This document shows positions 6,276 through 50,600 of a DNA stretch of 64,000 nucleotides, piece by piece. This DNA comes from Mytilus edulis (taxonomy: Eukaryota), in the NCBI RefSeq assembly GCF_963676685.1, contig NC_092347.1, forward strand, positions 2,728,001 to 2,792,000, written 5' to 3'. The notes below the pieces were generated by a model that was not told where the DNA came from, did no database searches, and worked only from the letters and a program-made list of their open reading frames with translations. The number at the start of each line of letters is the position of its first letter. The first letter of the stretch is position 1. The translations under genes were made by a program, and so were the position numbers.

Positions 6276-9200
6276 CTCCGTACGCATGTTGAAGTCCGTA
6301 CATTGATCTATTTTTAAATTGTTATTTGGATGGAGAGTTCTCTCCTTGGCACTCACACCACATCTTCCTATATCTCTTAATTACTTGATATACCATAAGT
6401 AATGCAGTGTTCGATACTAACATCCATATACTAGCACTAGGCTGGCACCCTAGCCTGATAGATATGTGATATGTTCTGCAGTGTTCGGTACTGACCTTTT
6501 TTCTAACAAACGTTTCCTAAATTCTCCGTTAATAAATGTTAGGAAAATAAGGGTCCAAGGAAGTTGTATTTTTTGGCTATTTTGTTATGTCCCTTTTGGT
6601 CATGTAGCTCTTGCAAGGTTAGTCTTTTTTTCAAATGAAATTTATTTTTTTAGTTAAAATCACTTGCGTGTCGAATAAACAATCTAACCTATCAATCAGT
6701 TATCTTACTATTTCAGTACAGTTTGAGTCTCATTATTGTGACCAATACGTCAGACGACTTACAGAGAGTACATTTTATAATTTATCGTGGCATGGACAAA
6801 CTTCTCCTAAACTATGTGATTTTAGTTTTACTGGCGGAGAGAGTAGTGAGCATAGATCATATACAGTCTGCTTTGAGTCATTGGTATATGATTTACCATA
6901 TTCAGTAGGTGATATTATCTTGCAAGTAAAAAATGAGACGGGGAGTAAATCACAATGGGTAAGAGCAGTTTTATTTTTTGTTTTAATATTTTTAAAAGTT
7001 GTATCTCAGTTTCAGAGAATTTTTTGTTTAAATCAATGTGATCCTTTAAAAGGTAGAATTTATCCCTCCTTAAGACAAGATACTGGATTTACGTTGGTCA
7101 TTTTTTTTAAATTAAACAAAGCAATGCCAACTCTTTCAATTTGGATTTTCAGTTTGAAATGGGGATATTATTTTTGTAAAGTCTAGAAAAGTCAAATGTT
7201 TCAATACTATTGTAAGATGAAAAAGTCTTAGATAGCATGAACAATATAAAGTCCATAAAAGATCTTTGGTATTTTCTATATCCACATCTGATTAACGCCA
7301 TCTCTAGAATAGGCAGTTTCACAATAACTTCGAAACCCGGCTTTGATCGCTGATAAAACAGATGTTGATAATTAAGAGGGAGGTTTTGTGGAACACTTGG
7401 AAGACATACCAATATCCTGTTGTTTGTAAGGACACTTACGTAGTTTATGTATCCAATACAGTGATGGAAGATCCAGTTTTTTTTTATCCTTGGTTGAAAT
7501 TCCAAAGGAACATAGAACATACCTATGATTATCCAGGATTTCCTCTTGTGAAAGTGTCGTGAGGGTATATGTTGAGTTTCCGAGTGAATTCTCAATACCT
7601 AATAGACCTAATTCATTTATCAAGCAGTTTATGTAATGAGTTTTACATACAAAAAAGATTTTGTTTATGGATTTATCTACGGAGACAACAATATATTTTT
7701 CATGGAGGTAGGACACGTGTTTTGTAACATTTGGGTCTTTAAAGATTGACGTAGCATGGATATTGATAGATCCATTCAGTTTCTTAATTCTGATTTGAAT
7801 CAACGACCTCACAGCCGTAATCCATTCTGAATGAGCATCTACGTCTTCTTGCTTACGCTTCGCCCATTGCCTGTCATTATCCTGACTGAATCCACCAGTA
7901 TTTTAAAATTGTATTTCCAATTGATGGATTTAGGCTCACGATATTTCGGACCTTTGGATAACACATTTCGCCGGGAAGTGTTATTTAAAGTTTTGAGTAA
8001 ACTGACTAAGCGTTAGTCTTTTGAAGACCGTACGGGGGCCTATAGTTTTAAAATTCTGTGTCATTTAGTCCTATGAGGACGGTGGTGTCATTGGCAATCA
8101 TCTTCTTAATTTTATATTTTGTAATATACCGTATAATGTCTTATAGGAAAGGAATAGAACAATTAAAGTTGTTTTTCATCATGTTCATACCGTGAACTTA
8201 ACGTTGCGATTTGTGAGCTGTTATGCTATTCGAGACAAGGATTAACTTGATATAGTTAAGATAAATGTTGTTTGTGACACTAATTAGCACGACATTTACT
8301 GGATGACTTGATACTTTCGAAACGACGACAACGCTTCAGTTGAAATCATTGTAACTCTTATAACGCTTCCAATTTCATTTCCTGGTTTATAGGGGGATTT
8401 GTTTGCTTAATCTCTAAAATTGTGTATATAATTTGTAAATTTTTATCTGTAGGTTCATCTTTTTTCTATCTTTTAAACGTTTAATAGTTAGCTCGGCCTT
8501 TTAGAAATATTTTACATACTAGGAATTATTGCATAGAAGATTTCTCTGTGAGTAGATTTCGAGCCCTGATTTTGGCTATTGTTATTCATTTGTTTTAATC
8601 TACTGCAGTATTACACGGGACACGACAGATATATTGAGAAAACCTGCGTAAAGCAGGCGTACATGTTAACCATTTCCATTCTGCTACCTCATGGGTATAG
8701 AGAACCAATACCAAAACCTTACCTTATCATCAAAGTCACAGCATTTCGTTTTAGAGGTAATTAATATAGAATAAAGGCGCTACAGAAAAATATTTCTTTT
8801 AGCATGACAATGAGAAGACTGCAATAACATTCAATTGGGTGAGTTGGTGTACCTTTATTTTTCTCTCTCATGCTATCCAAATCTACAAAATGTTTAAATA
8901 CTGACTGAAAGTGATGTAAATGTGATAGACTGTAACCACTTTTCAATAAATAACTATATATACATAATAATCCATCAAAAATGTTATTTAACACTGTTTG
9001 CAGCTTGAAAAAGCTTACAAATTCTTCAGAATTTGGTCCACTTTTGAATGGGAACATATTGTTAACAAAACCGACAAAGTTACATCGAAATAAACATATT
9101 TATATTTGTTTCAGCGTAATTTTGTATTTGGTTTAGAATGCCCATTTAATACACCCACATTCATGAAAGGAAAGGGGAATGTAGTAACAACATTGGGAAC

Positions 9201-35100: not shown

Positions 35101-38100
35101 AAACTATATAGAGATATCGGAAAAAATTCAACTATTCTAAAAAACCAAACCTTTCACAATTAAGGAATCAATTTTAGACAAAAAAGACACCAAAATCCAA
35201 ACTGTTTGCTAATCACACATATGATCATATTTATAATAAAACAATTTTTTAACGGATAAAGACGAAAAAATTAAACATCCTTCTATATTCATTAATTTAA
35301 TATACTCATTACCGCTTTTTCAGTACTGTTTAATTCCTACAACTGTGATGAGATGCCGAGGACGGTTTCTCTAGATAAAACCTACACTTTATCATGGTAT
35401 GGTAAGACAAGCCCACATCTGTGTACGTTTAATTTTACTGGTGGTGGTAATGGAGAGTCCTATATAAACATGCAACTTTGTTTTGAGTCTGAGGAGTATG
35501 ACCTACCATCGTATGATGTAAAGCTTATAGTGTCAGACGAATCTCAGAAATGGGTAGGTTTAACTTTTGGTAAATAGAACATGTAGATGTCGGATACTAA
35601 GTATTGGTTTCGGACACATCAAATATTGACATTGATGTACATAGCTTTGATCGTTGTCAATTGAACTTTGATAGATAGTTGTCTCATAGGCACTCCATGA
35701 TATATCCCTACCTATGCATAGGCGATTTGCCAGCTTACATTGTGACAAGACACTCTTAGTTTTAATGTGCGAATTTTATGCGTTTGTTTTTTTCTACATT
35801 TGCTAGAGGTTTAAGGGGAGGGTTGAGATCTCAAAAAACATGTTTAACCCCGTCGCAATGTTTGCGCCTGTCGCAAGCCAGGAGCCTCTTGCCTATGTTA
35901 GTTTTGTATGATTTTTAATCTTAGTTTCTTGTTTATAATTCGGAGTTTAGTATGACGTCCATTATCAATGAACTAGTATACATATTTGTTTAGGGGCCAG
36001 CTTAAGGACGCCTCCGGGGTGCGGGAGTTTCTCTCGGTGCATTGAAGACCTATTGGTGGCCTTCGGCTGTTTTCTGCTCTATGGTCGGGTTGTTTTCTGT
36101 TTGACACATTCCCCATTTCCATTCTCAATTTTATTTACACATTGTAATAGTCAACTGCCTAAAGATGTTTATTTGCTAGACAAAACAGTGTTTGTTTAAA
36201 TGGAAAGAAAATGATTAAGTGTACCTGATCAATACATTCACCTTATTTGATGTACATTGCTGTTGTATATAGTCAGTGCACCAATTACTTCTCCTATATA
36301 TATACAGGTTTATGATGGCTCACAGCAACAGATTGAAAGACAATGTATAGAGAGAGCCTATGAGATAATGTTCAAGATGCAACTAACAAATTATTATACA
36401 GAGTCGTCATGGAAACTAAAACTGAAAATAACAAGTGAAAAACTTACAAATGTAGACGACGGTTGGTATACCATATACAATTAAGAGGGTCAATCAAATG
36501 TACTTGTTTAGTTGATGCTGTTCAGTATCACTTTAAGCGACTTTAGTAATAGAATGATGGCTAGTTTTTATTGGCGGAAAATGCTAAAGTCGGGGTCCTT
36601 GGAAAGAACCGGCGACAGTTGGCAGGAAAACTTTCTTAACTTGTTAATAACTAGTATACTTTTATATCTTCGAAAATCTTACATTTATTTTACACTGTTA
36701 AAACTTACCTGGTAAAGTTGGGTTACAATGTGACAAACCGTTGATACATTGTATAGTTTTTTTATGCCCCACCTACGATAGTAGAGGGGCATTATGTTTT
36801 CTGGTCTGTGCCTCCGTCCGTCTGTCTGTGTGTCTGTTCGTCCGTCTGTGCGTCCGTTCGCTTCAGGTTAAAGTTTTTGGTCAAGGTAGTTTTTGGTGAA
36901 GTTGAAGTCCAATCAACTTGAAACTTAGTACACATATTCCACATGATATGATCTTTCTAATTTTAATGCCAAATTATAGTTTTGACCACAATTTCATGGT
37001 CCACTGAACATAGAAAATGATAGTGCGAAGTTCAGGTTAAAGTTTTTGGTCAAGGTAGTTTTTGATGAAGTTAAAGTTACATCAACTTGAAACTTAGTAC
37101 ACATGTTCCCTATGATATGATCTTTCTAATCTTAATTCCAAATTAAAGTTTGACCCCAATTTCACGGTCCACTGAACATAGAAAATGATAGTGCGAGTGG
37201 GGGCAACCGTGTACTATGGACACATTCTTGTTTAAAACAGATAAAATGACTGCAATATGAAAATACGAGGATATAGTATGGTTGCCGAAGGGACAACTTT
37301 GCACCAAAGAAATTTGACATAGAAGTCAGCATCCGTAGGTCACTGTATGGCTTTAACATGCAAAAAGCTAAATCCAAACCGTATACCAAGTTTTTAAAAG
37401 TTCCGACATGACTAGTAAAAATACAATCCAAACCAAAAAAGAACAAAAACAAACACGATATACAGCAATAGACGACAACCACTGAATAACAGGTGTCTGA
37501 CTGGAACAGTCATATACACAATATGGTGGGGTTAAGCATGTTTGCGGGTGCAAAGCTATCCCCTAACATGGAACCGTGGTGTTACATCACCACAAAGAAA
37601 CACACTATAAAACCAGATGATTAGGACTTGACTCTACACAAGGCACACTGAAAAAAACACCAAAAGAGCTCAGACATAAAGTATCGATAAGACAATACTC
37701 GCGGTAACTAAAAAAAGAAGATGTGGTAAAAAAAACTATGATTGCTACTGAGACAACTCTTATGAGATATCTAGATATTGGAATAAATAGCAAATGGCTT
37801 GCCATAGATTTCCCTTGATAAGGCGGGTTCCTGCGGCCCTTACCTTGAGAGCAGATTCTAAAAGATGCATCACGGTGGCCCCATACTCCATAGGTAGTGT
37901 ACTTGCTGCATTATTTGGTGTAATGACCTTTGACTGTGCATTAAGCACATGTGAATGTACAAGCCTCACAGTATCTAGACCAAAGCTTGCTATCATTCCT
38001 CTGTCCATGACCACCACAACCCCAAAATTTGGCTCCAGCTGCTTGGGTCGTTTCTGAGTATTGCATGTGGCACTCATGGCACTTACTCATATTGCACTCC

Positions 38101-40954: not shown

Positions 40955-41150
40955 CGATTGAAGGAGGTCATAGGTTTCGAATCGAGGCAGGGTCTAACGA
41001 AAGACTACGAAATTGGTATGTGCTGATTTTCTGCTAAGAACTAGGAAGTTAGAGGGAAATCTGGTTGGCTCGTACTGGGACTAATACATTCGGGTAGAGA
41101 GATATATGTCTTCCTGCGGACTGTTACTAGCGCATTACAAGTCCGGCTTA
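40955..41150 (+). mobile_element. Degenerate SINE (Meta-SINE-like central domain)
   Basis: B-box-like GGTTTCGAATC followed by AAAGACTACGAAATTGGTATGTGCTG...CTGCTAAG...CTGGTTGGCTCG...GCGGACTGTT. Confidence 0.55.
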
Positions 41151-42499
41151 TTGTGTATAGATATAAGAAGATGTGGTATAAGTGCCAATGAGACAACTAC
41201 ATCCAAGTCAGTCTATTTCTATTTTTATATTTATGGGGAAAGACATGCTATTACACCTGATGGAAATCGACAATTCATCGTTATGATGGGGAGGGGGCAT
41301 CGGTGTAACAACTTTTAGTATAAAATGACATGAAGAACAAGACATCATCTTCTCTTTTTTAAACTACATGTTCATTAAAAATTCTCTTTAACTGCATGAT
41401 TTATTCACTTCTGAAATAAAAACTCTTTAAATTAGCAAAATATATTCAGCAACCCTCCATTTAAAAAAAGATGCAGATAGCCTCACGGTAGAAAATACGA
41501 ATTAAATACTTCTAGAAAAAATGCACTAGTATTGTCTTTAAACAGTAAAAGATATATTTTTTAACTAATGTTGAAAAAAAAAATGTACTAAATAGTATAC
41601 AGTATGACATTTTTCTGGTTGTTTCACATTTGACATTTGTCAAGAGTAAAACAGTTCATTGTCGATTGAAGTTACCTTTTCGTTATTACTCAGTTTTCTC
41701 CTTAGATCATGTACTTTGGATAACAGCGAAACAATAAATTAAAATGATAGGGAACGATTCTGTCACCTCTTTTAAATCACCAGTCAGTTGACAGACTTTT
41801 TCGAAACACGTGACTGACTTGTTCAAATATGAGTAAAAGTGAAACATTAGCCATATTCTTAAGTATCTGAGAAATTTTTGGGATGTCTAGAAATACTTTC
41901 GCTAGTCATGTCTTGGTGTACAGTGTCAACATGTGAAAATGATACTATTGGGATTTTTTTCTGAATTAACCGTCGTATATTAAGGAACTTCAAATCCAAT
42001 AAAATCACTCAAACGACCGACTTCAAGGTTTTAAGTACACGACAAACTAAATAAACATGAGCATACAGACCTTAAAAGAATATAGCCAACAGCTTGCATT
42101 GCATGATGGAGTTGGGAATGTAGTTTCTTTAACATTATTGCGCATGTACAAAAATAGTAGGGCGTGTTTGTATGCGACACACGTAATGCAACATTAGCTA
42201 GTATGTTTGGTTTAATTATTATTCTTAAATTTAAATCTTATTATTGAAATTACGGGGGCTTTCAAATAAAGAAGATATAAACCAGTAATAGTTTAATTTT
42301 GGCAGCTTGAATTAACATATAAGATACATAAATAAGTATAATTTACACACAAAATATTCATATAATACAATACAAAAGATACACATACGAATAATCTAAA
42401 TAAAGCGGGCCTAAAAGAAATAACAAAATGCGCCAAACAACCCGCCAAAAAAGATTAACAAAAACAAATTGTACACACACGCAAATAGAAGAATTGAAA

Positions 42500-42695
42500 C
42501 CCAAGGAATGAGACACTTCCTTGTAAGTTCCAGTTGAATATAAAAGACATAAGAAACTTCCTTTATACGACACACCCAGAGAATATGACGAACTTCCCTG
42601 TAAGTGCACTAACTTCAAGTAAGCTTATGATCCCAAAGAATAGTACACTCCTTTGTAAGATCAAAATCCTAAGGGATAAATTGCTCCCTTATAAG
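42500..42695 (-). ncRNA. Array of 4-5 related bulged stem-loops in the element's 3' UTR
   Basis: Sense-strand units CUUA(C/U)-stem-loop-stem-GG at 42668-42695, 42632-42659, 42575-42604 and 42500-42527, plus a degenerate one at 42543-42568. Compensatory changes and G-U pairs. Confidence 0.6.
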
Positions 42696-42783
42696 ATTAA
42701 CAACGATGACCTCCTAACAATATACAAAGCATACAAACAAAAATTTAGATGATTATCATAAAACAAAAGGTAGATAATACAGA

Positions 42784-43307
42784 TTATATATGACTCATAA
42801 CATGTTGAAAGCATCTGCGAAGCTCGTATAGATCAGCTTCATTAAGATGCAACCCTCCGTCCTTAAAGGCAAAAAGAGACCTAATAGGACGTCCTCTTAC
42901 AAGAAACCTTTTATATGATTTTATAAAAATAATGTTATATTTAGAACATACAGAAAGTAATTGCCTATTAATATTAGCACATTTAAAACCAGTTAAATCA
43001 AAATCTACAGGTCTTGGTAAAATAGAAGATATATAAAGCTTGACATGCGGAGACAAAGATTTAAATTTTACAAATAACTCTCTAAAATCAGCAATGATAC
43101 GATCTACAGAAAAGTCTCTTACATCGTTAGTTCCAACATGAATAAGACAGTAAGAATAGTTACTTAAGTTTATTTCACCTTGATCCAGTTTCTTGTTAAT
43201 AGTGGAAATACGAGCACCACTGTAAGCTTGAAGGTCCATGTTAGAAATGCCAGATAAATGTTTACAGATTGAATCGGATAACACCAGTACATGTTTGTTG
43301 GTTATGT
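42784..43307 (-). CDS. SGNH/GDSL hydrolase (esterase) of the YR element
   Basis: Block I LSDSI, block II SGARI, block III HVGTND, block V DGGLHLN. Intact ORF from the acceptor ttttttcag|AC at 43307. Confidence 0.9.
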
Positions 43308-43318
43308 CTGAAAAAATA

Positions 43319-44289
43319 TTATAAAAGTTTGGCCATTGACTCTGCAACAGATATTTTCTCCTGCATAGTAAAATTCAAATATAGCTTATAGGCATCACTT
43401 GCCCAGTCACCGTGCAGCTGTATCAGTTCACTAGGGACTCTAGCCTGAAAGGCAAATGACGCACCTCCCCGTCTAAAAGAATGTGTAGAGTAAAGGCGAG
43501 TATCTCGTCCAGTCAATGAAATGATACGCTTAAGTTTAGATTGAAACTGTTTGTAAGTTACTGTTTTAAGACTAGCATTTCTCTTGATAACAAAAGCAGG
43601 AGATTCTTCAGGAGCAGGAATCATGCGGCACATTCTATTGTATGCAGTAACGGGACATAAAATAGAATCATCTATTTTGACCAAAGGTATTTTTAAAATT
43701 CGTTCACCACATTGTATAGTTTTAGTCCATTCAAACACCACAATAGCTACTCTTTCATGCATAAAAACTTTGCCTCTAGTAAGTTGCCTTTTATAATCAA
43801 AAGAATCTACAGAATCTGGCACTAAATTAGACTTACGAGACATAAGAAAAAAGGCAAATAAAAATAAACACCAATACACAATATCTGTACAATTATCAAG
43901 GTCTAAAAATTTAAGCATCTCTTTTAGCAAATCGGGAGTAATAGGCCTAGCTTGTCTAGGACAGTGTTGTTTGACTCTAGAAATTCCCGCCATTAACAAC
44001 TTAAATTCAAAATTATCTAAAGGGGGAAATGGAAGATCTAAATAAAAATGCATAATTTTAACACCATTGATATAATTCCTGATAGAATCAGTCGATTTGA
44101 ATGATCGACTTAAAAATTGCGCATAACAGTTAATCGTTTTAAAAGTGACAGGAATAGGAGCAACATCAAAATAAAAACAAAAGAGCAAAAAGGCTCTCCA
44201 TTGTGAAACTAAATTTTTCTTAGTTCCTACTGCAAACGCAGACTTAGTAGACTTTTTAACATCTTTCTCTAACTGTTTAAACTGAACAT
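43319..44289 (-). CDS. Tyrosine recombinase (phage-integrase family) of a DIRS/Ngaro-like element
   Basis: Uninterrupted ORF from the acceptor ttttcag|AT at 44289, with N-terminal core-binding region (SAFAVGTKKNLVSQW...CYAQFL...IRNYINGV) and catalytic R (MSRKSNL), K (WTKT), HSFRRGG, HGDW and Y (SDAYKLY). Confidence 0.93.
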
Positions 44290-44816
44290 CTGAAAAAAGG
44301 AATTATGTATATATATGTATATATAAATCACCAACTGTGACTAAAAGAAAATAGGCTGTCCTCAACTTCAAATTCCTCTAAATTCGAGGAAACAGAGTTA
44401 AAAAATTGAGTTCGATGCAAATCAGACAAATGCCAACGACCCTAAAAATTTTACGTCTAATTCAAACAATCGAAATCAAATAATAAAGATATAACATAAC
44501 AGTGTGAGCAGGTTTCACTCACTTACAAATTTATTTATATTTTATACCTTAAGGCTATCCAGTCAAATTAACAGACGAATTTCAGCCAAGTAATTACTGG
44601 TTTTTAAATTATAAAAACAAACCTATGTATCAACAGTATTGTGTGAATTATCAAAATCATTGTAATAAATTACTTTGCTTTTCGTGGGCCCTCAGGTCAA
44701 GGACGTATACAAATCCTTGTCTTATCTTATATTCAAAATAGAATAAAAACAGGAAAAAGCAGAAAAATGCATATCACGTACAGTTACAGAAAGTTCAAAC
44801 TGTCAAGAACGATGTA

Positions 44817-47330
44817 CTTCTTCTTCTTCTTCTTCTGGAAGTCCACCCTATCTACAGGGTCACCGCATTTAAATTTTTTGTTTATTTTTAAAATTGCGTT
44901 ATTTAAAATTCTATCTACTGGTTAAAATTTAAAATAATATTAACAGAGTTAGAATAGGATAAAACTAAATATTAGTTAAAACAGGAACTTGTATGTACAC
45001 TATACATTTAAAATTATAAAATGGATAAAAGTAATATCTTATCAGTTGTTTAAATTCTCTTAGCAAAGGAAAGTGAAAGGAACTACTAATCTGTACTAGT
45101 AATTGGTTAAATTTATGGACTAGTATGGTTTCTTAATAAGTTTAAATATATGTAATTATTAATAGATAAAATGGTAAGGGATACGAATAAAACAAGAAAC
45201 TTGTAAAAATTAGTTTTAAGTAAAACAGTAGAGTTTGTCAATAGAATTTGGGTCTATAAGATTATTTACAGGGGTAATTAATTCATATGCTCTAGTTATG
45301 GTTTAACTATGAATTACTTAGCTACATCACCTAGTATTAATTAAGTATATAGACAAAGTAGTATAATACTTGTTATATGTTACATGCCCACGACTGACAG
45401 CCACTTGTAGTTTAAGCTCAGAACTCAACTGATTGTTCATTTGTTTTCCAAAAGTTGGGTTCTTTTAGCATGCAATGCATAGATCCAGTCTTTGCAGATT
45501 CGTTCTAAGTCTCTCTGCTGAGGCACAGTTATAAGGTCGTTACTAGAACAGTCAACCAATAATTCTAGAAGATCCTCATCAGAATCAATTATACTGCAAT
45601 AGTGGATATGATTATCCTCTAGTAGGGATTTTAGTCTATCTTGATGAATTTTTCTCACACAATTCAGACTTTCACAGTTGATTAGGAAATGTTTATAATC
45701 CTCAGGTCCTACCATGCACAATTTGCATTCTGCAGATTTTTTTCCGTCAAATCGGTTGGTAATACTTTGGGTTTTGTAAGTTCCTGTAAGTATCCTGGAT
45801 TTTATTATCCCTTTGCTAACATCTCTTTTATTATCTCTGACACTGCTCCAACAAAAGTTTGGTTTTTTAAAGTTCCAGTTGTTTACTTCCATATATTTGA
45901 GTGTTGATTTGCTTCTAGCAGATTCGGTCCATCTGTTTTTCCAGGTTTTGTCTATAACATCATGAGTCAATCGTTTCCAATTTTTCTCTGGATTTAGTAT
46001 AATCTCATGTGCGGATGGAAGATAATAAGATTTGAGAGTTTTGTCCACATTTATGTACCAACTATTTGATTTATCATCTTTTGTAGCTAGCTGTCTAATT
46101 CCAATTTTACACTCAATTGAGTTGGGATCTTTTGAAATTCATAGAAATAGGGAAATGACAGCTTTATGTACGAGTTGCTCAATAGATTCGGCTCCGAGTA
46201 AGATATAGATAGCAGCATCTGCAGTTCTTTGTGGTAAGGATAGAATTTGTTTAAAAGTTTTTTTCTGAAAAGCTTCTAATTTTTGGATATCAGTTTTAGT
46301 AATGTTGAGAATTTCAATTCCATAGATCATTCTTGGTATAACATAAGTCCGCCATAGTTTATACGATAATAGTGGATTTATACCATTTATTCCATGTAAT
46401 CCAGCTCCTAATAGGGAATACATTGTAGCTCTTGCTACAGAAATTCTATTCTCTACATTTGGATTATTTTTCTCTTGTCTTTCAATTCCTAAATGTTTAA
46501 TGTTTTGCTTTTCGTCTATTTTTTCATTAACAAGTTGAAGATTTATATCTTTATTCTTCTTGTTTATCATTAGAATTTCAGTCTTTTTGCTGTTTATCTT
46601 TACCCGATCGTTTTTGGTACAGTTTTCAATGATGCGGAGTTGGGTTGAGGCATCATGTTCTGAGCCCGGCCAGCACATAGCATTATATATATATGTCATC
46701 TGCGCACGTTGGGCAACCCACATAATTGGTTCCAATTTTAATTCTTATGTTTGTGGATTCAAGAGTATTTAGGATATTCTTATTATAGGCCTTGTAAAAA
46801 TTGGCAGAGAGAATTCCACCTTGTTTGACTCCCTGCTCATTTACAAATGTTTCCGAGATATATCCTTGAGATTTAACTTGTGTAGTTGTTTTGTTATATA
46901 GTTCCTTAATTAGTAACCATGAAGCTCCATTAATTCCTTGATGATATAATTTCCAAAATAGGTGTATATGGTCTACCACGTCAAATGCTTTTTCTGCATC
47001 CAGAGTTATTAGAATGAGACACTCGTTTTTATCTTTGGCTTCGTTAATTGCTTCAGAGATGAGAAGAGCAATATTAATAGAGGATGCACCCTTAGTGAAA
47101 CCTTTCTGAAGCTTGTTTTGATGTTTATTTAGTGTACCCTCGATTCTAGCTCTAATACAAAGCTCCAAAATCTTACAAATGATGGAAATGACTGTGATGC
47201 CTCTATAGTTGGATGGAATAGTAGGGTCTTTGTCTTTTTTGTGGACAGGGGTCAGCAGACCTTTTTTTGATGATTTCAGGAACATGCTTTGTATAGAATA
47301 TATTGTTAATTAAGGTAACTAGGAATTCAG
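44817..47330 (-). mobile_element. 5'-truncated non-LTR retrotransposon (RTEX/RTE-like LINE), RT plus C-terminal CCHC, frameshifted
   Basis: NYRGIT, QKGFTKG, LDAEKAFDVV, GVKQGGILS, CPTCADD, YSLLGAGLHG.NG.NP and CKLC...HFLINC. (GAA)n tail at about 44817-44835. An (AT)n expansion frameshifts just after ADD. Confidence 0.92.
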
Positions 47331-47608
47331 TCAACTCTGTTCCACCATAAATTAGATGTTCTGCAGTTAAATCTTTTACATCCCCAGCCTTTTTTCTTTT
47401 TAATATTGAAATACGCTTGGTGATTTCTGTTGAGGTAACAGGTTGAATTGTTATTTATGATGTACATATTTCCGGATCTGAAGATGTTTTCCGATATTGA
47501 CATGATTTTACATAAATTTGGCGGGGAAAATCTCCCACAATTCTCTGATATTTGTAAACAAAGTGATGTTTCGTAATCATTAAAACACGTGTGTAAGAAG
47601 CTGCTAGG
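47330..47608 (+). promoter_or_regulatory. Candidate compact NEIL1 promoter/5' region
   Basis: About 280 bp between the LINE 5' end and the ATG, with an E2F-like TTTGGCGGGGAAAA (47517-47530), an ETS-like TTCCGG (about 47470) and CACGTG (47586). Motif matches only. Confidence 0.35.
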
Positions 47609-50600
47609 ATGCCTGAAGGACCCGAATTGTATATGTCTGCACAGTTTATCAACCAAACTTGTAGAAACAATCTCTTTTCAGGGCAAATATTTAAATCATC
47701 AGTCAGTCGACAGCCAGATATTGATTGGAATGAAGAAACATACACAATATCTGCTGTGACGAGAGGGAAAGAAATAAAATTAACGTTACAATCGATTACA
47801 AATGATCAAAAAGAAAAGAAGAAATGTGCAAAAAATCAAAACAAAACACTTGACATTGTTTTCCAGTTTGGTATGTCTGGTAAATTTGATTTTTATGAAG
47901 CAAATGAACTTCAGAAACATGCTCATTTGAACTTTTTCACCAAAACTGAAAATAACAAAAGTGTTCCAATGGTGTTGAGTTTTGTAGACTACAGACGTTT
48001 TGGGAAATGGCAGCCTAATGGAAACTGGTCTGTGGAACGAGGACCCTGTGTACTCACAGATTACGTTCCATTTAGGTATTTATAAACAAATTGACACTTG
48101 TATTTCATGGAATGAGTTAGTCCAAATAATTATGCCGTCTAGAAAGGCTATTTTTGATTTTGCTGTTACGCGTCCAAATTTTTTTTATCAAAAAGCCGTA
48201 CTAAAACGGCATAATTATTTGGACTAGGAATGAGTAAGAAAAGGAATGATCAGAGGCAGATTTAGTGGGACCGCTGCAACTCTTTTCTGGGAAAAAAATT
48301 GATTGATTATATAGTGAATCTTTGAAGCTTGGCTGTATACCCTCTAAGGCATTTAGTTGGCCCCACTTATGAAAATTTCTGGATCCGCCTCTGATGATGA
48401 CAGTATAACACAAATCTATAAATGGCCGCCAAGTGCAATGAAAAATAATAATATGTAATTTAAATTACTTAACCATGTGAACATGTTTTGGAAGCTGTGA
48501 TTTAAATTATATGAAAATGTCCCCTAACCACTGAAATTCAGTTACGACCTGAGATTTCATTCTTCAATACAGGTCATGACCTGCGTTTTCATTGTCATAC
48601 ATGTAGGTTGACAGGTTTTATTTTGAAACAAAAATTCATACAGTTAATACCTAATGTTTATTTATTAATTTTGTTATTTTCCTTTTCAGAGAAAATATAT
48701 TAAAGAATGTTGAGCTCTCTGTGTTCAGAAAACCTATTTGTGAAGTACTTTTGAATCAGAAGTATTTTAATGGTATTGGAAACTATCTCAGAGCAGAAAT
48801 ATGTTACAGGTAAAGTGATACTGAGATTATATTTGTCTAAAAGAAGTTGAAAAGTGATACTTTGGCATGCTGTTTACGGCACTGTCAACAATGTACAATG
48901 TATGAGTTTTTTAAAGGTCAATTTAAGATAAGCATTAGTCATCATGATCATGACCAGTGGTACAATGTAGGTGAATGAAGTTTGGTATGCAGTTGTATAA
49001 ACATTCAAACTTTACATGATTCCATGAACCTATAGATAAAAGGCAACCATGGACTTTGCAATATTTTGGTTCATTCTACATGTATAGTACTTTTACATTC
49101 CTATAACTTATAAACTTTTGCCTAGTTTTGTTTGAATTAAATCCCTTGAATAATTGTCAAGTTCTGTATAGAATAGTCAAAAGCCATTAATAAATAACAC
49201 TTAAAATGGATCTACCGATGACTGAACCGCTTCGCAGAGATCAAGTACATGGAGCACTAAATTTACTGTACAATAAAATAAATTCCTGACATATATTACA
49301 TTGTCAAAAAATGTATATGCTTTTGCCCTATTGATTCTATTGATGCCAGATTGATGCCAGATAACAGCAATATTTTTCTTTCATACTGTGAATTCATTTA
49401 TTTTCATGGGTATCAATTTTCGTTGATTGCTGAAAACTTGCATATTTGTGGAAATTTGATTTTGTGGTTTTGATTTTGTGGTTTTGCCAATCTCTGTATA
49501 TAAAGCCTATTAAAAATATGTTATTCGTTGAACATTTGAATTTGTTGTTCACCTGTATCCAAGTACCCAACAAAAAAGCGAATAATAATGAATCCACATG
49601 GGGTATACACAGTGAGTATTAACTTACATGTAAGTGTATGAAACACATGTTGATAGTTGTCTTTCTTTGAACTGTTGTCTGAGGACAGTGAGGTTCCATT
49701 CTTGTTTTAAATATACATGGATTGCATTAACTAAAATGTATTAATCTCTTTTTCCTGACTTTGTACATGAATATCTGGATATTATGATGTCACATCTTAT
49801 TTCTAATAAATTGATGGCAAAACAAAATCAGAAGTTTAATACATGGGAAAAACTGTGATAAAGAGAGGTGAAAGATATATACATGTACCAAAGAGATATA
49901 CAAACTCACTAAAAAACAAACTGACTGGGGATTATGTCACATTCTAACACAAATTTTTGACAGAGATCTTAAAAAATGTTAGTATAGGACACAGACTGCC
50001 TAATTCCAAACAATGAAAAATTGAATTGAAATTGATATTTTGGCTTCAAATTGAATAAATGAAGCATTGTGTATAAAGTTATTATACCCCCGCTTTGAAA
50101 AAAAGGGGGGTATACTGTTTTACCTCTGTCTGTCCTTCCGTCAGTCTGTCAGTCAGTCCGTCCGTCCCATGAATATTTTTCGTCACATTTTTCTCAGGAA
50201 CTACACTACCAGGATTTCTGAAATTTAGTTTCATAGTTTATATATGTCAGCTTTACCGTGTGATGCATTTTCAGATTCATCACTGGACAACTTCCTGTTT
50301 ACCGAACACTTGTATCATTTTACACATGATAGCCAAGTTGAAAATTTCCGTCACATTTTCTCAGGAACTATACTAAAAGGATTTCTAAAATTTGGTTTCA
50401 GGCTTGATATAAGTCCGCTATACCGTGTGATGCCTTTTCAAATTCATCACTCGACAACTTCCTGTTTACCGAACACTTGCATATTTTTACACTATTAATA
50501 TTATCCACTTGCGGCGGGGGTATCATCAGTGAGCAGTAGCTCACAGTTTCACTTATTATAAGATTATTTTAAATTTTGAATTTCAAAATAATTGGTAGGT

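Follow-up and report, generated by a model that had tools for sequence, protein, structure and literature searches.

A covarying array of bulged hairpins in the 3' untranslated region of a Ngaro-type retrotransposon of Mytilus edulis

In stringent-type long interspersed nuclear elements (LINEs), such as eel UnaL2, insect R2 and SART1, stem-loops of the 3' untranslated region (UTR) are recognised by the element's own reverse transcriptase (RT) and are believed to mark the RNA out for reverse transcription. In retroviruses, the constitutive transport element (CTE) and the direct repeats act on the unspliced genomic RNA; their structured motifs are repeated and keep certain unpaired bases. The epsilon signal of hepadnaviruses has two stems, a lower and an upper one, with a 5' bulge between them and a loop at the apex. 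The transferrin-receptor 3' UTR carries five iron-responsive elements (IREs); these, like the MS2 and PP7 operators of phages, are small hairpins that one protein reads by their shape and a few bases. Tyrosine-recombinase retrotransposons are the least understood order of retroelements. For DIRS, Ngaro, PAT and VIPER it is not known how the RNA is chosen or how reverse transcription is primed, and no reverse-transcription primer is known in the whole DIRS order (PMC7192593). The DNA described here is a 64,000-nucleotide stretch of the Mytilus edulis genome (NCBI RefSeq assembly GCF_963676685.1, contig NC_092347.1, forward-strand positions 2,728,001 to 2,792,000; hereafter the window), in which a Ngaro-type tyrosine-recombinase retrotransposon lies on the minus strand and carries an array of five small hairpins between its last open reading frame (ORF) and its 3' terminal repeat. 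On comparison of sequences the array is a selected, sense-strand, clade-specific structured element of Ngaro 3' UTRs. It is so far undescribed and kin to known kinds of retroelement cis-signal. A first-pass annotation of the window, made from the letters alone, had stated that it knew of no such array described for DIRS or Ngaro elements, and none was found in the literature searched, the coverage of which was incomplete.

The array extends over 42698..42495 of the minus strand, after the stop codon of an SGNH hydrolase ORF and before terminal repeat B1, and comprises four canonical hairpins and one that is damaged in the window copy alone (Table 1). The canonical unit has at its base a lower stem of 4-8 bp. 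A 5' bulge of 2 nt (UA or UU) separates this from an upper stem of 7 bp, which is rich in purines on its 5' arm and carries a loop, mostly of 8 nt, with G-U at its start and A at its end. The upper 5' arms of the canonical units begin at 42691, 42655, 42600 and 42523, and the four units quoted by the first-pass annotation were found on the minus strand exactly as written. The CUUA and GG flanks that it had reported around the stems are present as well but do not stand alone: GG is the pairing partner of the C-U in CUUA, the helix runs outward over a further 4-7 bp and the UA forms the 2-nt bulge, as seen in the fold and in the unit table, such that the flanks represent the top of the lower stem plus the bulge. 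Similarly, the spacers that had been called unrelated consist in large part of these covarying lower stems, which differ completely from unit to unit yet are always complementary (AAUCU/GGAUU, UGAUCU/GGAUCA, CACU/GGUG and UGGAACU/GGUUUCA); unpaired linkers do persist between the units, the longest separating units 2 and 3. The copy described as degenerate is indeed a fifth unit (unit 4), but its damage is private to the window copy, which carries two substitutions of its own at this unit, one of them breaking a pair. In the other copies of the family AAAGGAA and UUCCUUU form a perfect 7-bp stem around the 8-nt loop GUUUCUUA.

Table 1. Coordinates of the hairpin array and of the surrounding parts of the element (window positions)
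Feature	Position	Strand	Description	Basis or remark
Hairpin unit 1	42665..42698	-	lower stem AAUCU/GGAUU; bulge UA; upper stem UAAGGGA/UCCCUUA; loop GCAAUUUA	flanked-hairpin scan, RNA minimum free energy (MFE) fold, unit alignment
Hairpin unit 2	42628..42663	-	6-bp lower stem; bulge UA; upper stem CAAAGGA/UUCUUUG (one G.U); loop GUGUACUA	covariance model, 47.2 bits
Hairpin unit 3	42573..42606	-	4-bp lower stem; bulge UA; upper stem CAGGGAA/UUCUCUG (one G.U); 10-nt loop	centroid structure; covariance model, 34.6 bits
Hairpin unit 4	42539..42567	-	non-canonical, without 5' bulge	copy alignment, per-copy substitution table
Hairpin unit 5	42495..42532	-	7-bp lower stem; bulge UA; perfect upper stem CAAGGAA/UUCCUUG; loop GUGUCUCA	best covariance-model match, 49.7 bits
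GC-rich hairpin GCGGG...GGCCCGC	42405..42446	-	double GGCG box; straddles the border of internal region and B1	conserved in sister families
Terminal repeat B1	42248..42437	-	ends ...CCCCCGTAATT; ATTAAA hexamer 42297..42292	B occurs twice in the full-length copy
Terminal repeat A1	44443..44626	-	joined almost directly to 44439	comparison with full-length copies L016, L017
ORF3, tyrosine recombinase	43319..44188	-		weak Pfam Phage_integrase match, below cut-off
ORF4, SGNH/GDSL hydrolase	42784..43347	-	187 amino acids (aa); stop 85 nt upstream of unit 1	Pfam Lipase_GDSL_2, E = 2.5e-9

The hairpins are real and non-random. A scan for CTTA, then a stem of 7 bp in which G.U counted as a pair, a loop of 8-10 nt and GG retrieved four sites, all within the array, and no others on either strand of the whole 64-kb window. 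When 20,000 first-order Markov sequences were matched in composition to the 421-nt region, a single site occurred in 29 of them and more than one site in none. The hairpins are present in the MFE or centroid structure of the sense strand and dominate its predicted fold, which reaches -82.8 kcal/mol (z = -2.98, with none of 100 shuffles as stable) as against -49.2 kcal/mol for the antisense strand. No tandem array was detected at the hairpins by Tandem Repeats Finder, because outside the motif the units share shape and not sequence.

A genome search based on the recombinase recovered many Ngaro families, two of which, besides that of the window element (family 1), carry the array at the same place. 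The recombinase of family 2 (at least nine copies) is 67% identical to that of the window element and the recombinase of family 3 (at least five copies) is 57% identical. In these sister families the array begins 80-90 nt past the hydrolase stop and ahead of B1. The units match one to one across the three families: the starts of units 1 and 2 are 36 nt apart in all three, and in each case the third unit is the one with the long loop (10, 10 and 12 nt). Variation is found in the bulge, which in family 2 is often UU in place of UA, and after the stem, where in family 3 A-G often replaces G-G and the U.G at the top of the lower stem becomes U-A.

Covariation was counted on 40-nt alignments of 14 units from the three families, set in one register and scored against a 13-bp bulged structure. 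Standard pairs fill 90.7% of the cells, compared with 70.4 +/- 2.2 in column shuffles, none of 500 of which scored as high, and compensatory cells number 41, compared with 12 +/- 3.2 in the control. All 13 pairs have changed on both sides, in agreement with the compensatory stem changes pointed out on first inspection. When the partner strand is slid by 1-3 columns, pairing drops to 32-55%. RNAalifold, given five whole arrays and no structure, returned five hairpins with the bulged layout, 23 of the 57 pairs being compensatory. The stems vary while the first and last bases of the loop are invariant, the second base and the closing A-U pair nearly so. Within family 1, the three stem substitutions common to at least two copies all preserve pairing, whereas of the private ones four keep it and five break it, and in the old array fragments L022 and L023 the substitutions are mostly pair-breaking. 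This pattern of shared and private substitutions fits selection in active lineages followed by decay after insertion. The divergent fragments L022, L023 and L024 were set aside as covariation evidence, being decayed pieces between other repeats and uninformative on selection.

The imperfect pairs have a strong strand bias. Among the paired cells, G.U or U.G occurs 28 times and A.C or C.A twice (two-sided binomial p about 9e-7). On the complementary strand these 28 pairs, including the conserved U.G atop the lower stem, would be mismatches, and the structure therefore belongs to the sense strand. The claim that the wobble pairs work on the sense strand only was thus upheld, and it fits either RNA or plus-sense single-stranded DNA. 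The single-stranded complementary DNA (cDNA) intermediate of DIRS-1 is a copy of the messenger RNA (PMC7192593); a cDNA of that type would be the wrong strand, leaving the element RNA as the simplest carrier. The structure is consequently assigned to the sense strand, most simply as RNA. The element is expressed, in one orientation or the other: in RNA-seq reads of one study the full-length copy is mostly covered, array included, at a depth of about 1-3 and with strong strand bias.

Beyond the three families the unit was not recovered. The unit covariance model, which scores 35-50 bits on most of its training units (8 of 12 reported), found nothing convincing in 15 loci of other families from the same genome and 80 metagenome Ngaro loci (best 18 bits, E = 0.7). 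In the metagenome loci the motif was present in none by strict scan, covariance model or a shape-only descriptor; clusters of matches to this descriptor are confined to the three families, with scattered single matches elsewhere. Model and descriptor together place arrays in these families alone, with none in about 90 other Ngaro loci or at other positions of the elements. The one close metagenome relative, L055 (67% identical), has a sequence that ends before the UTR. A scan of viral contigs found nothing. Rfam cmscan of 41000-44000 at E <= 1 gave no match inside the array to the IRE, epsilon, CTE, histone stem-loop or other models, and the lone match outside it, STnc410, is at chance level (18.6 bits, where the gathering score is 50). 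Scanned for the pattern, the whole genome yielded 174 matches compared with about 67 in the control, an excess due to the three Ngaro families plus an unrelated high-copy repeat. Structured 3' UTRs may be general in Ngaro elements, with this bulged unit specific to one clade. The high-copy repeat (sites include G000:C4:2708446, C1:39610109 and C3:35784971) displays a single CAGAAAA-GUUUAUAA-UUUUCUG hairpin that imitates the upper stem and loop of the units but comes with no bulge, lower stem or array.

Several of the known systems resemble the array in part. As in the LINE stem-loops, a structure in a retroelement 3' UTR is lineage-specific and retains shape over sequence; in contrast, those stem-loops are single, sit at the very 3' end and belong to target-primed elements, whereas the array holds four to five bulged hairpins 250-450 nt from the predicted 3' end. 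The IREs and the MS2 and PP7 operators share with it the small hairpin, the 5' bulge and the conserved loop, and the transferrin-receptor array also numbers five and also lies in a 3' UTR, but their loop and bulge are of another kind, none of the Rfam IRE models matches the array and there is no link to iron regulation or to phage coat proteins. Within the tyrosine-recombinase retrotransposons, a parallel is the 3' hairpin that Poulter and Goodwin pointed out in DIRS-1 (as cited in PMC7192593). The DIRS-1 hairpin is likewise near the RNA 3' end and a possible cis-signal for reverse transcription; it differs in being a single small terminal candidate for self-priming, in another superfamily with inverted repeats and a methyltransferase.

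Small hairpins are read by proteins through a fixed shape, bulge and loop ends over variable stems. The stems of the array vary freely while pairing, bulge and loop ends stay fixed, and the units are therefore read as repeated binding sites for a single protein. We propose, at about an even chance of being right, that the sense RNA of this one Ngaro lineage carries the array in its 3' UTR as a conserved structured cis-element, which serves as a multivalent protein-binding signal with an element-encoded partner most likely. One protein would recognise shape, bulge and loop together, and the repetition of sites would load several copies of it onto the genomic RNA. The first candidate partner would be the gag-like ORF1 protein with its Cys/His C-terminus and the second the RT; once loaded, the protein might select the genomic RNA for ribonucleoprotein assembly, for packaging or for reverse transcription through RT recruitment. 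An element-encoded partner is favoured because the motif is limited to one clade while the other Ngaro families share the same host. In itself the array gives this order of retroelements a concrete cis-signal, covarying and strand- and clade-specific, that can be mutated, probed and used as protein bait, as well as a compact structural marker for annotating one mussel Ngaro lineage.

Several points weigh against this proposal. To reason from clade restriction to a partner encoded by the element is indirect, a host protein would account for the same anatomy, and protein binding, the identity of the partner and the step served are all matters that we infer. ORF1 has no Pfam, PDB or informative Atlas match. 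The covariation is drawn from three families of one genome plus paralogous units. The RNA-seq signal is thin, with 56 reads in the best run; if the library is of the common dUTP (deoxyuridine triphosphate) type, the dominant reads would be antisense. Other functions proposed for the loops and units were rejected. No complement of any loop occurs elsewhere in the elements, as long-range pairing for cyclisation would need; kissing-loop dimerisation would use a short palindrome present in only some loops; and mimicry of splice sites or branch points fits only some units.

The main rival, of lower probability, is that the hairpins are sites for a host RNA-binding protein that promotes nuclear export, stability, localisation or translation of the unspliced element RNA. 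The anatomy fits this reading just as it fits an element-encoded partner, and a slow-evolving partner would explain why loop ends and bulge were kept while the element proteins fell to 57% identity. The position of the array, between the last ORF and the 3' terminal repeat, is that of the CTE of Mason-Pfizer monkey virus and of the Rous sarcoma virus direct repeats. The CTE, however, consists of a single long hairpin, interrupted by two internal loops, to which a host export factor binds; the array is clade-specific and without similarity to these retroviral elements in sequence or in Rfam. The distribution is harder to reconcile with a host partner, as other Ngaro families live in the same genome with the same host proteins and are without the motif. 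No Rfam model, that of the IRE included, matches the units, and UGU-type PUF sites, tried as a specific candidate and rejected, fit some loops of families 1 and 2 only and fail in family 3.

An origin of reverse transcription resembling epsilon is improbable, but would be the long-sought start site in tyrosine-recombinase retrotransposons if true. After docking on a bulged hairpin, as the hepadnaviral polymerase does on epsilon, the RT would begin cDNA synthesis at that site, with a protein primer or in some other way, and then transfer to the terminal repeat; packaging or RNA selection would be coupled to priming, and the GGCG double box at the B1 border would be the first template-switch acceptor. 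The units do share the epsilon layout within a retroelement RNA signal and lie just upstream of that conserved double box, and the DIRS-1 3' hairpin has already been suggested as a self-primer (PMC7192593). In contrast to the array, epsilon has a bulge of 6 nt and not 2, a single functional copy and a polymerase with a terminal-protein domain, for which no counterpart was seen in the RT ORF. An origin needs no four to five copies, the predicted 3' end of the RNA is 250-450 nt further downstream, and no Rfam epsilon match was obtained.

Recognition of the units by the recombinase as duplex DNA, one of the roles suggested at first pass, is very unlikely. The units are inverted repeats with 7-bp arms and mostly an 8-nt spacer adjoining a recombinase gene, as would suit lox- or FRT-like sites. 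Such sites have the same arms throughout and no strand bias of imperfections, whereas here the arms differ between units yet are complementary within each unit, which a sequence-reading protein does not require, and nearly all of the imperfections, 28 against 2, are G.T on a single strand. Nor would an asymmetric 2-nt bulge or covarying lower stems have any meaning in duplex DNA. As a recombination site, the conserved palindrome at the B/A junction, flanked by GTAATT, is the better candidate; it is also a candidate circle junction. At the B1/A2 junction of L016 (4640-4700, minus strand) the sequence reads GTAATT / GGTTTG...palindrome...AAACCAGTAATTAC, and the layout of this junction is conserved across families (L030, L037, L043 and L056).

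A small-RNA precursor, another early suggestion, or a functionless tandem duplication of a palindromic unit would explain hairpin-shaped repeats, but both are highly improbable, since bulged stems of 11-16 bp are shorter than known Dicer and Drosha substrates and nothing was found in favour of processing, while duplicated units would not be dissimilar outside the motif and missed by Tandem Repeats Finder, nor would neutral sequence have stayed foldable at 57% protein identity when decayed copies lose pairing.

Downstream of the array, the further hairpin announced by the first-pass annotation exists and straddles the start of B1, its sequence being kept in the two sister families. Its loop contains the second of two GGCG boxes, and B1 begins exactly there. 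The border motif (window 42431-42449) consists of a T-run followed by two GGCGG-like boxes 4-16 nt apart and is found elsewhere at L030 3216, L040 3434, L043 3221, L056 5783 and other places; among 110 Ngaro loci from this genome and the metagenomes the double box occurs in 31 in sense orientation and in 2 antisense. Repeat B displays an ATTAAA or AATAAA hexamer about 45 nt before its end, and the ATTAAA of B1 is a putative poly(A) signal. In distant families a covarying 3-bp mini-hairpin was observed between the GGCGG-like boxes. In both copies of repeat B of family 2 (L147 6476 and 7395), a hairpin GAUUUAU...AUAAAUU surrounds the GGCCAAAUAAA poly(A)-signal region. In a different Ngaro lineage, represented by L043 from the same genome and L056 from metagenome contig JYMV01005804.1, the 3' UTR has one hairpin, of 8 bp and with 8 nt in its loop, on the upstream side of the GGCGG boxes. 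Between these two families four of the eight pairs have changed (three on both sides, one on one side), and all are still paired. Two repeated hairpins of yet another sequence are present in the 3' UTR of L065.

Ngaro elements are defined by their split direct repeats, by the lack of a methyltransferase and by an optional hydrolase ORF that follows the recombinase (PMC9210276). These features are all found here, which makes the host element a Ngaro member and supports the earlier placing of the array downstream of a tyrosine recombinase and an SGNH hydrolase ORF. The split repeats, with A1 at the 5' end and B1, A2 and B2 at the 3' end, are seen in families 1 and 3. In family 3 copy L148 they lie at 1228-1375 (A1), 6486-6631 (B1), 6631-6778 (A2) and 6846-6991 (B2) and are 99-100% identical; the C3 copy of family 1 has A1 and B1-A2-x-B2 and measures 5.95 kb from A1 to B2. 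The window element spans 44626..42248 and has about six close copies in the genome. The C3 and C4 copies have in common a 4.9-kb internal region, which encodes the gag-like ORF1 product, an RT/RNase H of 619 aa, the recombinase and the hydrolase, and four ORFs are present in full-length copies of families 2 and 3 as well. Pfam detected no methyltransferase in any ORF of families 1 and 2 or in ORF1 of family 3.

A1 and B1 are present, but A2-B2 is missing, both in the window copy and in the copy on C4 (L017). Relative to the canonical copy, about 3.2 kb of ORF1 and the RT/RNase H region is deleted from the window copy; relative to L017, which is itself short of about 0.4 kb of ORF1, the deletion is 2.75 kb. 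The window copy is a deletion derivative that retains recombinase, hydrolase and hairpin array. The internal deletions of the window copy and of L017 are different, and each begins directly after A1 (window 44439-44443, 42248).

The RT/RNase H ORFs of full-length copies of families 1 and 2 encode 612-619 aa, match RVT_1 at E = 1e-7 to 9e-10 and have weak RNase H matches; family 3 has a 616-aa ORF in the same position, outside the Pfam scan. The recombinase ORF lies downstream of RT/RNase H. The recombinase has 772 homologues, some of them named 'Tyr recombinase domain-containing protein' from Mytilus, the nearest named ones being from Mytilus galloprovincialis, M. coruscus and M. edulis and further ones from Argopecten and other taxa, and the invariant residues R118, H236, R239, W262 and Y270 form the R, H-x-x-R, W, Y set. 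ORF4 of families 1 and 2 matches Lipase_GDSL_2 at E = 3e-10 to 4.5e-9, that of family 3 aligns with it, and the SGNH blocks xDS, GTND and DGGLH are kept in all three families. OSK of Oskar is an SGNH-fold RNA binder that has lost its catalytic residues, and ORF4 was tried as a pseudo-enzyme of this type: the match of ORF4 (L147 5484-6029) to the OSK domain is below threshold (E = 7.6e-4, 19.2 bits, under the 27-bit cut-off) and the catalytic blocks are retained. In sequence, ORF4 looks more like an active hydrolase than an RNA-binding pseudo-enzyme. The gag-like ORF1 (L148 1436-2701, L147 1325-2593 and L016 8682-9491) displays a low-complexity acidic/basic N-terminal half and a conserved C-terminus that is Cys/His-rich after a basic stretch (C-x8-C ... 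H-x-C-x2-C-x9-H-x2-C).

Directly upstream of the Ngaro copy lies a separate and unrelated 2.6-kb repeat (window 44816-47456, minus strand), probably non-LTR (without long terminal repeats), to which the RT at 46683-47285 belongs. This repeat matches RVT_1 at E = 1.4e-15 and, weakly, zf-RVT, and has many copies genome-wide at 96-97% identity. Two short tandem duplications, at window 36862-37196 and 50189-50492, flank the region, with a period of about 168 nt and 87-96% identity.
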